A DNA stretch of 64,000 nucleotides. Origin: Basidiobolus meristosporus CBS 931.73 (taxonomy: Eukaryota; Fungi; Basidiobolomycota). Both the position numbers and the translations under genes were made by a program. The DNA is taken from positions 1 through 64,000 of the forward strand of contig MCFE01000387.1 in the NCBI GenBank assembly GCA_002104905.1, written 5' to 3'. The notes beneath the pieces were generated by a model, which searched no databases, was not told where the DNA came from, and saw only the letters and a list, made by a program, of their open reading frames with translations. The first letter of the stretch is position 1. Each line of letters starts with the position of its first letter. This document shows, one piece after another, positions 51,727-57,635 of this stretch.

Positions 51727-52190
51727 GATCTCAACTCCGCCCTTGTTCAGATGAAAGAAACCAGCAAACAATAGAAAGGCTGCTTTCTTATATTTGCAGG
51801 TACGGTAGATCATGATTAAACATCGTTTCAAGAAGAGCACTCGCTATTGTTGTCACCCAGTGATCGTAAATCATTTCGTCCCCTCCTAAGCTTTAGGGCG
51901 ACGATGGAGGATGGGGATGGGGGATTGGAAACAATAGACCCATACTTCACTCATCATGCGCTTTGCCACACTGCCCTGGGATGACACATATATTTGAAAC
52001 AGACATAATAAGTGGCAAAGTCATTTGTAATTTACTAGTAGACAACCTAGATGGATACAGACCATCCAGTGGGTAATTAATGTAGTGGATCTTCCAAACA
52101 GTCCTTGATCAACAAGTGCATATTCAGGCCGAAAAAAAATACAAAAAAGAAAGGAGCGTGACATTATACTAGAAAGCACGACAACGTTGA

Positions 52191-52460
52191 TTACATCGCA
52201 AGACTGCTTGAGGATCGGTCGCCCCGGGGAGTGTTCGCTCTTGCCATATATTCCTCGAGTCGCATCGACAAATCCACCATGGAAGGCTTGTTATGGATGT
52301 GTTGACGTCTGTTATTGAGGCAAAAATTCTTCGCCTGCTCCATGTTCCTTCGATGTTGGATTCTTCTAAGAGGGGTATATGTGTTGTTCGTTCTTTGCGA
52401 TAGCAGAAGGAAATATCTTTGGGCGTTATCGAGAAAGTGGCGCGTTATTTTATCGTCCAT
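52191..52460 (-). CDS. Small hypothetical basic protein (89 aa)
   Basis: Single ATG-initiated ORF MDDKITRHFLDNAQRYFLLLSQ..YTPLRRIQHRRNMEQAKNFC..; TATAAAA on the minus strand about 100 nt upstream (52561-52567). No family recognised. Confidence 0.4.
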   Translation of the reverse strand: MDDKITRHFLDNAQRYFLLLSQRTNNTYTPLRRIQHRRNMEQAKNFCLNNRRQHIHNKPSMVDLSMRLEEYMARANTPRGDRSSSSLAM

Positions 52461-53235
52461 AATAGTAAGGTGTTAAGTGAATTATGCGGGTTCGTTTATT
52501 TGATTTGCCGTGGCAAAGGATTCTGGATATGACCTTGGCGGTTTGTTCCCTTCGAAGAGATTTTATATTGACTTGAAACTTCGTCTTGGGACTATCTCAC
52601 TAATCGGCTAACCCTAACCGAGCCGTTTCTCAAGTGAAGTCTAATCCCATTGGCTGAATTCCTACAGTGAACTGATGTTATCTCTCAGCCTAATACTGAA
52701 ATCCGGACCATGCCGGTTTTAAACTTGCCAAGCGATAGAGAAAGTCGATGAATTCCACATGGAGCCATTGATTTTGTCGATACTTTCAATACGTGTATTC
52801 TATCTTGTAACCTTCTTAATTTTTCTTATGGCAATTCAACTTTTTTGTTCCCACATTGAATTCCCCCCCAAAACAACTACTTGTATTGGCCATTTCTACC
52901 ATCACAAATTCACCCACAAATGACTGCCCATGATTTCTCCGGAAGTTGGCCAGGTTACTCACCCAGGTCCCCTAGCCCTAAATCCTCGACCATGAAGGTG
53001 GAGAAACTTGTAATCTTATGATTACCAAGGCGTCTAAGCCACCAAATGATACCACTGCTGTCAAATAAATTACCACACGAAATATCTACCCAATTTGAAA
53101 ATTCCGTCTCTAGAAAATCCCGAAAACCTTACCAAACTCACTAGTATAGGCAGAATTATGGTTAGATAGCCCAAGGAGGTTTGATAATCGCGTAGATTCA
53201 GTCAGTGGCTTAGATGCCTACTATGTTGCAAGCAG

Positions 53236-53242
53236 TATAAAA
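53236..53242 (+). promoter_or_regulatory. TATA box of the tandem-repeat protein gene
   Basis: TATAAAA about 66 nt upstream of ATG 53308. Confidence 0.6.
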
Positions 53243-53307
53243 GTATCCACCTTAGTCCTTGAAAAAGTGTGCTCAACTTCGCATTGAAGAAATCCTCCTT
53301 TGAAAAC

Positions 53308-54357
53308 ATGTCCTACAACCGCTCACCTCTTTCCCGTTCTCGCCAAAACGTTGGAAACAACTACGATGAGGAGCAGAACCGTAATCAAAATCGCTATGGT
53401 CGTGGATTAGGTCGTCAGTACGACAATGAATATGAGCAATATCCTCGCAGCGGTCGCTATGGTCGCAACTTGGGTCGCCAATATGAGGATGAGGAAGAGC
53501 AAGAATATCCTCGTAGCCGTCGCTATGGCCGCGGCTTCGGTCGTCAGTATGAGGATGAGGAGCAAGAATATCCCCGCAGCCGTCGCTATGGCCGTGGATT
53601 TGGTCGCCAATATGAGGATGAGGAACAAGAATATCCTCGTAGCCGTCGTTATGGCCGCGGTTTCGGTCGTCAGTATGAGGATGAGGAACAAGAATATCCC
53701 CGCAGCCGTCGCTATGGCCGTGGCTTAGGTCGCCAATATGAGGATGAGGAGCAAGAATATCCTCGTAGCCGCCGCTATGGTCGTGGCTTTGGACGTCAAT
53801 ATGAGGATGAGGAGCAGGAATATCCCTACAGCCGCCGCTATGGCCGTGGACTTGGTCGCCAATACGAGGATGAGGAGCAAGAATATCCCTACAGCCGCCG
53901 CTATGGCCGTGGACTTGGTCGCCAGTACGAGGATGAGGAGCAAGAATATCCCTACAGCCGCCGCTACGGTCGTGGCTTTGGACGTCAATATGAGGATGAG
54001 GAGCAAGAATACCCCTACAGCCGCCGCTATGGCCGTGGACTTGGTCGCCAATACGAGGATGAGGAACAAGAGTATCCTCGTAGCCGCCGCTATGGCCGTG
54101 GCTTTGGACGTCAATATGAGGATGAGGAGCAAGAATATCCCTACAGCCGCCGCTATGGCCGTGGCTTAGGTCGCCAATATGAGGATGAGGAGCAAGAATA
54201 TCCTCGTAGCCGCCGCTACGGTCGTGGCTTAGGTCGCCAATATGAGGATGAGGAGCAAGAGTATCCCCGCAACCGTCGCTATGGCCGTAATCTGGGCCGC
54301 CAGTACGAAGGTGAGGAGCAATACCCCCGTAACCGCCCATACGGCCGCCAATACTAG
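53308..54357 (+). CDS. Intronless 349-aa disordered tandem-repeat protein, unit YEDEEQEYP(R/Y)SRRYGRG(F/L)GRQ
   Basis: Open frame from AACATG at 53308 to TAG at 54355-54357. Twelve 21-aa units, one 22-aa unit and three degenerate flanking units; many synonymous differences between units; TATA upstream and AATAAA downstream. Confidence 0.85.
   Translation: MSYNRSPLSRSRQNVGNNYDEEQNRNQNRYGRGLGRQYDNEYEQYPRSGRYGRNLGRQYEDEEEQEYPRSRRYGRGFGRQYEDEEQEYPRSRRYGRGFGRQYEDEEQEYPRSRRYGRGFGRQYEDEEQEYPRSRRYGRGLGRQYEDEEQEYPRSRRYGRGFGRQYEDEEQEYPYSRRYGRGLGRQYEDEEQEYPYSRRYGRGLGRQYEDEEQEYPYSRRYGRGFGRQYEDEEQEYPYSRRYGRGLGRQYEDEEQEYPRSRRYGRGFGRQYEDEEQEYPYSRRYGRGLGRQYEDEEQEYPRSRRYGRGLGRQYEDEEQEYPRNRRYGRNLGRQYEGEEQYPRNRPYGRQY
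53419..54354 (+). repeat. 63-bp coding tandem repeat array (about 15 units)
   Basis: GAGGATGAGGA(G/A)CAAGA(A/G)TA recurs every 63 nt (e.g. 53551, 53614) with no unique spacers. Confidence 0.95.
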
Positions 54358-55062
54358 GCGATCTTATCATATTGCCAACGTAAGAAAACCCCGTTATATA
54401 ACTATTGTACCTAACTAAGCTTTTTTATCAAAACGGTAACGGTAACTGTTCATTCGAGATAAAATAAAATCCCAAAAAACCAATTCTGCCCGGGTCCTAG
54501 CAACTGATTTTCCACATCTTCACCGATTCCTAGACCGCAAACAGATTAGCATTGCATGTGCATGCCTTATCTAATCATCTAAGGAACCGTGAATTGGCAA
54601 ATAGCGGTAAATCCACCATACCTAGCTGTAATGAGCTGTCAAATAACCATCCACTCCGGTATGTCGGAATATAGGCTATTTCCATTAACAGAGCCTCTGT
54701 AGCTAGAATGGTACTGTTTCAAAAATTCCCATACATACCTCCAGGAATGATTCGGTATAATAGTTCATCTATATTCCGATATTCAGTTCAAAGGAAATGA
54801 CATGCAAGAAACACTGTAATTTGGCTTGCGCTTAACAACATAGGTATCTTGGATGACAAGATCATTCGAAACAAATGAATTATACAAGGAAACGGAGTTG
54901 TTTATTTGCTCCGTTGTGGATTTCTCATTGAACATTAGTTATTATGGATAAATAAACTGGAAAAATAATAAGTACAAGCAGGCAGAAGAAGGTCACATCG
55001 CAAGCAATTATAGCTCTATGCTGGGACAAAACGATATCTATGTATAATCCACGCTACTGTCC

Positions 55063-55311
55063 TCACGCTTCAGCCATTTGTGGAACGGAGGTGCGATTCA
55101 TCAAAAGAGAGTAGAGGTCCTTCGAAAGGACTGGCTTTCTTACTATGTGGGTGTGCTTTTCTCGAACCATTGGCACACCTCCAAGGTGAATATTTCGAAG
55201 TGATTTGACAGAACCATGTGGGAATTGCGGATTGGACTGGGAAGAAACCTGGCTTGGTAGGTTACTTGGCTGGGTGTCAAGCGTATTAGCGTCCGAAGAG
55301 AAAGGTGCCAT
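55063..55311 (-). CDS. Small hypothetical Ser/Pro/Gln-rich protein (82 aa)
   Basis: ATG-initiated ORF MAPFSSDANTLDTQPSNLPSQ..; TATATAAA element at 55384-55393, about 75 nt upstream (orientation ambiguous). Confidence 0.35.
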   Translation of the reverse strand: MAPFSSDANTLDTQPSNLPSQVSSQSNPQFPHGSVKSLRNIHLGGVPMVREKHTHIVRKPVLSKDLYSLLMNRTSVPQMAEA

Positions 55312-56623: not shown

Positions 56624-57635
56624 ATGGCCGCACAAATTTCCAAGAAAAGAAAGGTAACTAATCATTCACAACCCCCTCCACTTGGATGGATGGCACAGAG
56701 AAGCACGATTGGATTCACCCATCCTTTCGAACATCGGCCATTGTCATAATGATGAGATTTTGATTTCTGACACCTCTTGTTTGAATGCCTGCCTTCGGGA
56801 ATGTGGCATAATGCACTGAATTTTATTTATATCTCTGATATGACATTATACATCCAATCCTTACCTCAACCGCCACTTTATCACACAAGGAATCCGCTTT
56901 ACTAATTGATCTGTCGTTTAGTTCATCGCTGATGGTGTTTTCTATGCCGAACTTAACGAGTTCTTCACCCGCGAGCTCGCCCAAGAAGGTTACTCCGGTG
57001 TCGAAGTTCGTGTCACCCCTGCCCGTACCGAAGTCATCATCCGTGCCACCCGTACTCAAGATGTTCTCGGAGAGAAGGGACGTCGTATTCGTGAATTAAC
57101 TGCCGTCGTTCAAAAGCGTTTCAACTTCCCCGAAAACACTGTCGAGCTTTATGCCGAACGTGTTGCTAACCGCGGTCTCTGCGCCATCGCCCAATGCGAA
57201 GCTGTTCGTCACAAGTTGCTCGCTGGTCTTGCCGTTCGTCGTGCTGCCCACTCTGTTCTTCGTTTCGCTTTGGAATCCGGAGCCAAGGGTGCTGAGGTTG
57301 TCATCTCCGGTAAGCTTCGCGCTGCCCGTGCCAAGGCCATGAAGTTCGCCGATGGTTTCATGATTCACTCTGGTCAACCCGTTCGCGACTACATTGACAC
57401 TGCTGTTCGTCACGTTCATCTTCGTCAAGGTGTTCTTGGTATTAAGGTCAAGATCATGTTGGATTGGGATCCTTCTGGCAAGATTGGACCTAAGAACCCT
57501 CTTCCTGATATGATCACTGTGATGGAACCCAAGGAGGAAGCTCGCATCACTGAACCTATCTCTGAAGATTTCCAAAAGAAGGTCGAAGCACCTGTTGAGC
57601 CCGAGGTCGCTGAACAAGCCACTGAAGCCCAATAA
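56624..57635 (+). CDS. RPS3: 40S ribosomal protein uS3; 2 exons with a 268-nt intron (56654-56921)
   Basis: [114 protein letters not shown]. Confidence 0.98.
56742..56845 (+). ncRNA. Intronic box C/D snoRNA candidate in RPS3 intron 1
   Basis: Perfect 7-bp terminal stem TGTCATA (56742-56748)/TATGACA (56839-56845) directly flanking box C ATGATGA (56749-56755) and box D CTGA (56835-56838). Internal CTGA (D') at 56767-56770; internal hairpin ATGCC..GGCAT. The host intron is several times longer than neighbouring introns. Confidence 0.8.

Follow-up and report, generated by a model that had tools for sequence, protein, structure and literature searches.

Does a run of 63-bp tandem repeats in the genome of Basidiobolus meristosporus CBS 931.73, a member of a genus of frog-gut fungi, belong to a gene, does that gene have relatives, and what may its product do? 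The repeats lie in a window of 64,000 nucleotides (nt), corresponding to positions 1-64000 of contig MCFE01000387.1 (assembly GCA_002104905.1), and fall within an open reading frame (ORF) of 349 amino acids (aa) at 53308-54357, here called the solo gene. The data reported below show that the gene is real, coding and under purifying selection, and is not a minisatellite carrying an accidental ORF. As judged by sequence comparisons, the solo gene and a tandem array of paralogs make up an undescribed protein family, which is apparently restricted to Basidiobolus. What the proteins do is approached through their composition, their predicted structure and their promoters, and several readings are weighed.

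The solo gene starts with the ATG at 53308, ends with the TAG at 54355-54357 on the forward strand (+), and is contained in one exon. The coding sequence (CDS; 349 aa plus stop, 53308..54357) specifies a protein of 43.8 kDa, with an isoelectric point (pI) of 6.2 and a grand average of hydropathy (GRAVY) of -2.37. The initial annotation had described an intronless, TATA-preceded ORF, and this is borne out by the reading frame, by the single-exon gene call in GCA_002104905.1 and by the TATA box TATAAAAG. Over 53438-54288, Tandem Repeats Finder detects 13.5 copies of a 63-bp period, which match at 86% and are free of indels (0%). The periodicity is far beyond chance. The first 80 residues (53308..53547, +) include a hydrophilic N-terminus (MSYNRSPLSRSRQ...), alignable to an ortholog in Basidiobolus ranarum, and three units that depart from the core. 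The last of these is a 22-aa unit (residues 59-80), itself preceded by two degenerate units. Twelve core units of 63 bp, each exactly 21 aa, follow (aa 81-332; 53548..54303, +), and conform to the consensus YEDEEQEYP[R/Y]SRRYGRG[F/L]GRQ. A protein-level alignment of the units assigns the C-terminus (54304..54354, +) to a last degenerate unit, YEGEEQYPRNRPYGRQY, of 16 aa plus a final Y. The earlier count of about 16 units is thus fair, as it corresponds to 12 units of 21 aa, one of 22 aa and three degenerate ones. Each unit of 21-22 residues is made by an acidic block (Y-EDEEQE-Y-P) and a basic block rich in aromatic and Gly residues (R-S-RR-Y-G-R-G-F/L-G-R-Q). The sequence AATAAA at 54463..54468 (+), 106 nt 3' of the stop codon, is a candidate polyadenylation signal.

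Changes among the repeats mark the frame in which they are read. In the core units, 17 of the 23 variable nucleotide columns fall at third codon positions, and pairwise comparisons score 388 synonymous versus 92 nonsynonymous codon differences. Units are 86% identical as DNA and 93-95% identical as protein in the sense frame. Over the 86 codons alignable to the B. ranarum ortholog, pN measures 0.16 and pS 0.59, corresponding to a dN/dS (ratio of nonsynonymous to synonymous substitution rates) of ~0.15. All the 74 Arg codons of the solo gene are CGC or CGT, which swap freely, and the remaining four Arg codons are never used. CGC and CGT similarly account for 21/21 Arg codons in RPS3, and for 33-60% in three ordinary neighbours. 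The bias may be a sign of condition-specific high expression, and is only suggestive because repeats share ancestry.

The opposite account, in which the ORF arose by accident in an expressed minisatellite or results from an error of assembly, takes its appeal from the unusual scarcity of stops in all six frames of the array. An antisense ORF of 365 aa spans 53273-54370 (-), and ORFs of 94-143 aa in other frames also cover the region. Moreover, short-read unitigs break in the array, and one or two of the paralogous copies are frameshifted. The antisense ORF is ruled out as coding, since unit identity drops to 68% in that frame, versus 95% in the sense frame. The ORFs of 94-143 aa (unit identity 68-71%) are by-products of a stop-free repeat unit, and not genes. 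Substitutions track the codon positions of one frame only, the syntenic ortholog shows the dN/dS reported above, and the promoter is conserved. Genomic runs match the flanks and internal unitigs without mismatch, and exact internal pieces are found in an RNA run. The account is largely refuted, and only a very slim chance is left to it.

Three sequencing runs bear on the locus, X1 and X2, made from genomic DNA of the same strain, and the sole RNA run X3. X1 and X2 match both flanks and several internal unitigs of the repeat. Their contigs break inside the array, and the repeat copy number is therefore without independent confirmation. X3 is labelled 'DNA?', and is RNA, as it skips RPS3 intron 1 (56652-56919) at GT..AG, reaches a depth of ~21,900 on RPS3 and is zero on most intergenic DNA. 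Exact pieces of the repeat gene are found in X3 at 53568-53723, 53748-53808, 54036-54126 and 54189-54252, at a depth of 31-49. These pieces can be referred to the solo locus, because each of them occurs as a single copy in X1 and X2. The repeat gene was hence weakly transcribed in the only culture for which RNA was available; the evidence for expression is partial. X3 also includes exact contigs on both sides of the gene, at 52069-52526 (458 nt, depth 21) and 54908-55283 (376 nt, depth 43). Both regions lack called genes and contain short ORFs only, and may correspond to unannotated small transcripts or non-coding RNAs.

The protein had been regarded as an orphan. This view has to be abandoned, as a syntenic ortholog resides in B. 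ranarum, and a paralog array lies ~20 kb from the solo gene, with a second copy on another contig. The ortholog (KAK9720696.1, also P0002) measures 88 aa, being cut off by a contig end. The gene order DUF3605, LMWPc, Mem_trans, repeat gene is shared by B. ranarum and B. meristosporus. The paralog array is located on MCFE01000387.1 at ~74-82.7 kb (L003 14392-20070 / L006 598-8272), ~20 kb downstream of the solo gene and on the opposite strand. Its intact members are three paralogs, which measure 309, 332 and 315 aa; one or two further copies carry frameshifts (L003 17810-18355, L006 598-1669). The second array copy is found on contig MCFE01000850.1 (L004 7587-13682), where one member measures 442 aa, versus 332 aa on MCFE01000387.1. 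A block made by a methyltransferase gene, two NicO genes and the array is common to the two contigs.

The paralog unit measures 22 residues, YEDDEELEYPRNRRYGRGFGRQ. Residues Y1, Y9, P10, Y15, G16, R17, G18, F/L19, G20 and R21 are kept in 50-63 of 64 paralog units. The RR pair was supposed to mark every unit. This is true of the solo gene, in which RR occurs 13 times, in 13/13 full units, and not of the paralogs, where RR is found only in 53/82 units and HR or RH is found instead in 29/82 (35%). All members of the family are near neutral, with a pI of 5.7-6.4 and a net charge of -1 to -12 among 130-200 charged residues. In X4, a DNA run of a diverged relative, family k-mers are present and encode EYPYNRR.

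Searches outside the genus confirmed the earlier statement that no known family is recognized, as Pfam and two large protein searches yielded nothing named. No Pfam family matches the solo protein at E <= 1 or the paralogs at E <= 0.1, Dehydrin, LEA (late embryogenesis abundant) and KGG (PF00257, PF10685) included, and RRM, KH or other known domains are similarly missing from both in Pfam. An exhaustive phmmer search of 1.84 billion representatives gave 20 matches, and only P0002 of B. ranarum is a true relative; the others are unrelated charged repeats devoid of RYGR or EYP motifs. A single-sequence, word-indexed search of 5.8 billion clusters gave zero matches, and a search of the same clusters with a family profile retrieved only the B. 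ranarum fragment and a probable-phage repeat look-alike. Joint Genome Institute (JGI) metagenome contigs and the bacterial and archaeal genomes of GTDB contain pattern matches and no relative, so that a prokaryotic origin is without support. Published papers with the family motif strings were not found in the literature, and Basidiobolus transcriptome papers report nothing on the repeat gene. The protein collection searched lacks the B. meristosporus proteins themselves; restriction to Basidiobolus holds as far as databases reach, and family size and phylogenetic range are lower bounds.

The solo protein is dominated by a few residues (R 21.2%, E 17.2%, Y 15.8%, G 13.5%, Q 9.7%). It uses 13 amino-acid types, M and V once each. 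The initial annotation was right in noting that K, A, T, I, H, C and W are absent, and that net charge is near zero, as 74 R are balanced by 75 D+E. Core units have each a net charge of 0 or -1. The fraction of charged residues is 0.43, the net charge per residue ~0 and the charge-patterning parameter kappa ~0.43; charge blockiness exceeds that of composition-preserving shuffles by z = +12.8. The 61 aromatics are evenly spaced, the coefficient of variation of the gaps being 0.41, versus 0.88 +/- 0.11 in shuffles (z = -4.4), and adjacent aromatic pairs are 0, versus 10.6 expected from shuffles. GRG motifs are 13, one per unit, next to 32 GR, 16 YG, 6 FG and 6 GF. The RG motifs pointed out earlier are there in the form of GRG. 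In contrast, RGG and RG-x(0-4)-RG both count 0 in the solo protein, which thus falls outside the RGG/RG-motif proteins as defined by di- or tri-RG(G) motifs.

Neither a signal peptide nor a transmembrane segment is found in the solo protein, as initially stated, the highest 19-residue Kyte-Doolittle mean being -1.52. The TATA box is located 72 nt before the ATG, and leaves no space for an upstream exon that could carry a signal peptide. The protein is predicted to be cytosolic or nuclear, and is extremely hydrophilic and charge-balanced. AlphaFold2, fed with an eight-sequence family alignment, returned a mean pLDDT (predicted local distance difference test) score of 35.9, with every residue <50. 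The result is consistent with an intrinsically disordered protein, and this call was weighted above an ESMFold model. Look-alikes in the ESM Atlas are generic repeat fibres or solenoids, such as ice-nucleation, tail-fibre and KGG-repeat proteins, and feature matches in the Atlas are all <=0.74, which is chance level. Hydrophilins are defined by Gly >6% and GRAVY < -1, or a mean hydrophilicity > 1 (PMC4190154). Gly measures 13.5% in the solo protein and 11.3-11.8% in the paralogs, and GRAVY -2.37 and -2.29 to -2.35, respectively. Traits of Ddx4-type proteins, such as predicted disorder, alternating charge blocks and Arg associated with aromatics, are also all found in silico.

Family members share promoter elements. 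The TATA box of the solo gene (53236..53243, +) is conserved in B. ranarum, and paralogs feature TATAAAAGG or TATATAAGG. The 9-mer GTGGCTTAG is found 23 nt upstream of the TATA box (53205..53213, +), and is conserved in the promoter of the B. ranarum ortholog. A distal, inverted copy (53034..53042, -), reading CTAAGCCAC on the forward strand, resides ~170 nt beyond the proximal one, within the block CTAAGCCACCAAAT, in which 14/14 nt are identical to B. ranarum. The upstream regions of the two species are poorly conserved, except for four elements, the TATA box, the block GTGCTCAA directly 3' of it and the two GTGGCTTAG copies. In every array paralog GTGGCTTGG is found upstream of the TATA box, and a second copy usually occurs ~280 nt further up. 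In all family members the TATA box is thus preceded by a GTGGCTTRG motif. In the 64-kb window GTGGCTTAG occurs at 5 sites, versus 0.7 expected, and all are at the repeat gene, 2 in the promoter and 3 in the CDS. GTGGCTTRG is a candidate family-specific cis-regulatory element.

The copies of the 9-mer within the CDS (53720-53728, 54161-54169, 54224-54232) are read as codons CGT-GGC-TTA-GGT, which encode R-G-L-G. All four TTA codons of the solo gene are in the R-G-L-G context; TTA makes up 6% of the Leu codons in RPS3, and 8-14% in other sampled neighbours. The coding copies may be a coincidence, or may denote a link between coding sequence and regulatory motif. A further GTGGCTTRG pair (L003 13782-13790 and 14063-14071, -) is found between NicO and the first array gene, at the ~280 nt spacing seen in paralogs. 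Intact ORFs are missing downstream of the pair, which may be a promoter relic of a lost copy.

How could such a protein work? Tentatively, and with less than even confidence, the repeat protein is viewed as a protectant or cytoplasmic material that self-coacervates and is expressed under certain conditions, in stress or dormancy. The acidic blocks of a chain would pair with basic ones on other chains, in the manner of block polyampholytes undergoing complex coacervation. Cation-pi and pi-pi 'sticker' contacts would come from the 74 Arg and from some 55 Tyr at even spacing, Gly, Ser and Gln serving as spacers. Upon concentration, or a shift in ionic strength or water content, the protein would demix into a dense liquid, a gel or a glass. 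It would then act as a conditionally induced, hydrophilin-like protectant or cytoplasmic material, in stressed cells or dormant spores, under the control of the TATA promoter and of the family-specific GTGGCTTRG element. Ddx4 condensation is reportedly driven by blocky charge together with FG/RG motifs (Nott 2015), numbers of Tyr and Arg are said to set the saturation concentration of FUS-family proteins (Wang 2018), and even aromatic spacing reportedly favours liquids over aggregates (Martin 2020). Predicted disorder, blocky charges, even aromatics, conserved neutrality and the hydrophilin-like Gly content and hydropathy make the sequence evidence lean towards a condensate, one of the three functions proposed in the initial annotation, next to a nitrogen store and a peptide precursor. 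TATA promoter, Arg codons of the type used in highly expressed genes, and the low transcript level in culture agree with inducible expression.

Other data weigh against the self-coacervating protectant. X3 coverage is zero on the unique 5' (53201-53567) and 3' (54253-54450) ends of the gene, and transcription over the full length is putative. The gaps are plausibly due to tip-clipping by the assembler, because the unique ends would be short dead-end branches on the repeat graph, and gaps in read-contig coverage prove nothing about absence. The ESMFold model in the ESM Atlas, with a pLDDT of 0.64 and a predicted template modelling (pTM) score of 0.52, disagrees with the disorder call of AlphaFold2. 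The condensate function is a prediction from sequence and models. The repeat protein also departs from known hydrophilins and LEA proteins, which have few aromatics and much Lys, Ala and Thr. Finally, the unit is nearly invariant despite synonymous divergence. Such constraint is tighter than a composition-driven sticker-spacer function needs, and is a hint that the protein may have a particular partner, assemble in an ordered form or be processed.

Rival readings give the protein other roles. In a scaffold binding RNA or other nucleic acids, or in a nucleolar or ribonucleoprotein (RNP) component, Arg/Gly/aromatic blocks would bind RNA as glycine-arginine-rich (GAR) or RGG regions do, and acidic blocks would compete and tune the binding. 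The 13 GRG and 32 GR, the FG and GF motifs, the predicted disorder and the missing secretion signal all suit this role, and nucleolar proteins, Nopp140 among them, typically feature acidic repeats that alternate with basic ones. The role is nonetheless unlikely, because exact intramolecular charge neutralization would leave little positive charge free for RNA; RGG, di-RG and tri-RG motifs, and RRM, KH or other domains, are moreover all absent. An ordered structural material, in which units would fold on assembly (as a fibre, a solenoid or a crystal-like array) or be cross-linked through Tyr (dityrosine), as in spore or zygospore structures or in an adhesive, would explain why every unit position is tightly kept despite synonymous divergence, since a composition-driven function would not require that. 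Tyr content (15.8%), pTM and pLDDT of the ESM Atlas model (0.52 and 0.64) and the repeat-fibre look-alikes point in the same direction. Yet AlphaFold2 sees no structure (pLDDT 36), F/L are the sole hydrophobics and provide no core at a GRAVY of -2.37, and a protein devoid of a signal peptide would need unconventional export to reach the wall or the outside of the cell. This reading is rather unlikely too.

Another reading makes the protein a multi-copy peptide precursor, either a polyprotein or similar to ribosomally synthesized and post-translationally modified peptides (RiPPs), from which cleavage at RR would free ~13 near-identical 21-mers. Strict unit length, near-identity of the units, strong per-residue conservation and RR in every full unit (13/13) of the solo gene are as expected of such a precursor, and the layout of acidic spacer and cationic peptide recalls multi-copy antimicrobial peptide precursors. 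The hypothesis is nevertheless improbable, as the signal peptide that would give access to Kex2-type Golgi proteases is missing, no tailoring or protease genes are found within ~20 kb, RR is replaced by HR or RH in 29/82 paralog units, and the released 21-mer would be charge-neutral and not cationic. A variant granted slightly less credence still is that the family encodes leaderless, cytosolic multi-core precursors, with units excised at RR or by another protease, and Tyr and Arg possibly modified, to give a dozen copies of one peptide. If true, repeat-encoded peptides would be made in a way that has no match among described fungal RiPP or antimicrobial peptide systems, and strict unit conservation would reflect selection on the peptide. 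As hard to credit as the precursor cleaved at RR is a nitrogen (arginine) store, laid down and then degraded. An Arg content of 21%, ~10% Gln, the use of CGC/CGT only as in a highly expressed gene, and tandem expansion of the family would all suit a store. A store needs composition and not position, yet the Tyr, Pro, Gly and F/L positions and the charge balance are kept across paralogs and species. Signals for targeting to vacuoles or protein bodies are also absent, and fungi store Arg as a free amino acid in vacuoles.

The genes around the solo gene encode dihydroxy-acid dehydratase, NAC, ArfGap, DUF3605, a low-molecular-weight phosphatase (LMWPc), an auxin-efflux-type carrier (Mem_trans) and RPS3. 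Further neighbours encode a dual-specificity phosphatase (DSPc), GH16, a generic methyltransferase and two NicO transporters. The array-side methyltransferase was considered as a protein arginine methyltransferase (PRMT), and rejected. It measures 278 aa, matches only Methyltransf_11/23/25/31, and is too short for the PRMT C-terminal domain. UstYa/DUF3328, tyrosinase, P450, prolyl oligopeptidase and other tailoring or protease genes were not found by Pfam among the called genes at 43-83 kb of the contig, and a scan of the 64-kb window for tRNAs gave zero hits. Intron 1 of RPS3 contains a match to the Rfam C/D box family snoR1 at 56742-56808 (+; 27.1 bits, E = 0.018), under the gathering score of 49. 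Contigs in X1, X2 and X3 join 56816 to 56920, and feature then 8 (X1/X2) or 5 (X3) mismatches over 60-80 nt, a sign that the genome may carry another, diverged RPS3 copy at a different locus.

If the self-coacervating protectant is real, the family provides a natural, genetically simple block polyampholyte, with periodic acidic and basic blocks, Tyr/Arg stickers, neutrality and 13 amino-acid types. In it, evolution would have produced a counterpart to the engineered sequences which test charge-patterning and sticker-and-spacer rules, and a fungal stress or dormancy protein chemically unlike LEA proteins, Hsp12 and the tardigrade cytosolic abundant heat soluble (CAHS) proteins. Natural variants are on offer, in unit length (21 or 22) and in size (309-442 aa), as is a candidate dedicated promoter element, and these would make a tractable regulon. 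Should the proteins merely be lineage-specific and of low complexity, with a minor role, there would be a gain in annotation, a hypothetical protein becoming a named family.

Sequence likeness to the family outside Basidiobolus is found in P0001 and P0021, two metagenomic proteins of 619 and 668 aa. Both have a phage-derived look, with a globular N-terminal domain and zinc ribbons, and contain >10 repeats in which QSRRYGRRFADD is joined to an acidic stretch. Their repeats thus resemble those of Basidiobolus in the succession of SRRYGR-x-F and an acidic stretch, with phmmer E = 1e-16 and profile E = 1.5e-14. In composition-adjusted BLASTP the match has only E = 0.008. P0001 and P0021 also differ in having irregular unit lengths, few Tyr, another N-terminal globular domain and the zinc ribbons. 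The resemblance is probably due to convergence.

Similarities to the precursors of fungal multi-core RiPPs (UstA of ustiloxin, PhomA of phomopsin), and to multi-copy precursors of antimicrobial peptides (apidaecin, the Gly/Tyr/Arg peptides of the NLP-29 type of Caenorhabditis elegans) are found in the many near-identical short units per ORF, in the dibasic pair within each full unit of the solo gene and in the acidic stretches adjoining Arg/Gly/Tyr stretches. Compared to these precursors, the Basidiobolus family lacks a signal peptide and neighbouring tailoring genes, does not conserve the dibasic site in paralogs, and is made by charge-neutral units. The Ddx4 N-terminus, the LAF-1 RGG domain and FUS-family proteins share with the repeat protein disorder, alternating acidic and basic blocks of ~8-12 residues, near-neutral net charge, Arg beside Gly and aromatics (GRG, FG, GF, YG) and even aromatic spacing. 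There is no sequence homology, and the Basidiobolus protein is stand-alone, strictly periodic, and free of helicase or RNA-binding domains. It also lacks RGG and di-RG motifs, is far richer in Tyr (16%) and Arg (21%), and features acidic blocks made nearly only by Glu/Asp; phase separation is only predicted.

Hydrophilins, LEA and dehydrin-like proteins have other traits in common with the family. DprA and DprB of Aspergillus fumigatus are tandem 23-aa-repeat, dehydrin-like proteins linked to conidial dormancy and stress (PMC3103405), and yeast Hsp12 is a hydrophilin/LEA-like stress protein used here for comparison (PMC6054528). These proteins, as GsiB/KGG (PF10685) of Bacillus subtilis, resemble the Basidiobolus proteins in several ways: a cytosolic location, disorder, strong hydrophilicity, a Gly content >6% and ~20-residue tandem units. 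The KGG-repeat cluster is the sole structural look-alike in the ESM Atlas with a link to stress. The TATA promoter and low culture expression in one RNA run fit an inducible gene in this comparison as well. In contrast to Dehydrin, LEA and KGG proteins, of which no Pfam match is found, the Basidiobolus protein is Arg/Tyr-rich and devoid of Lys, Ala and Thr, a composition contrary to that of a typical LEA protein or hydrophilin. By physical chemistry, the family falls in known classes, the hydrophilins and the charge-patterned, Arg/aromatic intrinsically disordered regions. At the sequence level, strict periodicity, exact neutrality and Arg/Tyr/Glu chemistry set it apart from any homologous family. 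By analogy, its nearest fungal functional counterparts would be DprA and DprB of A. fumigatus.

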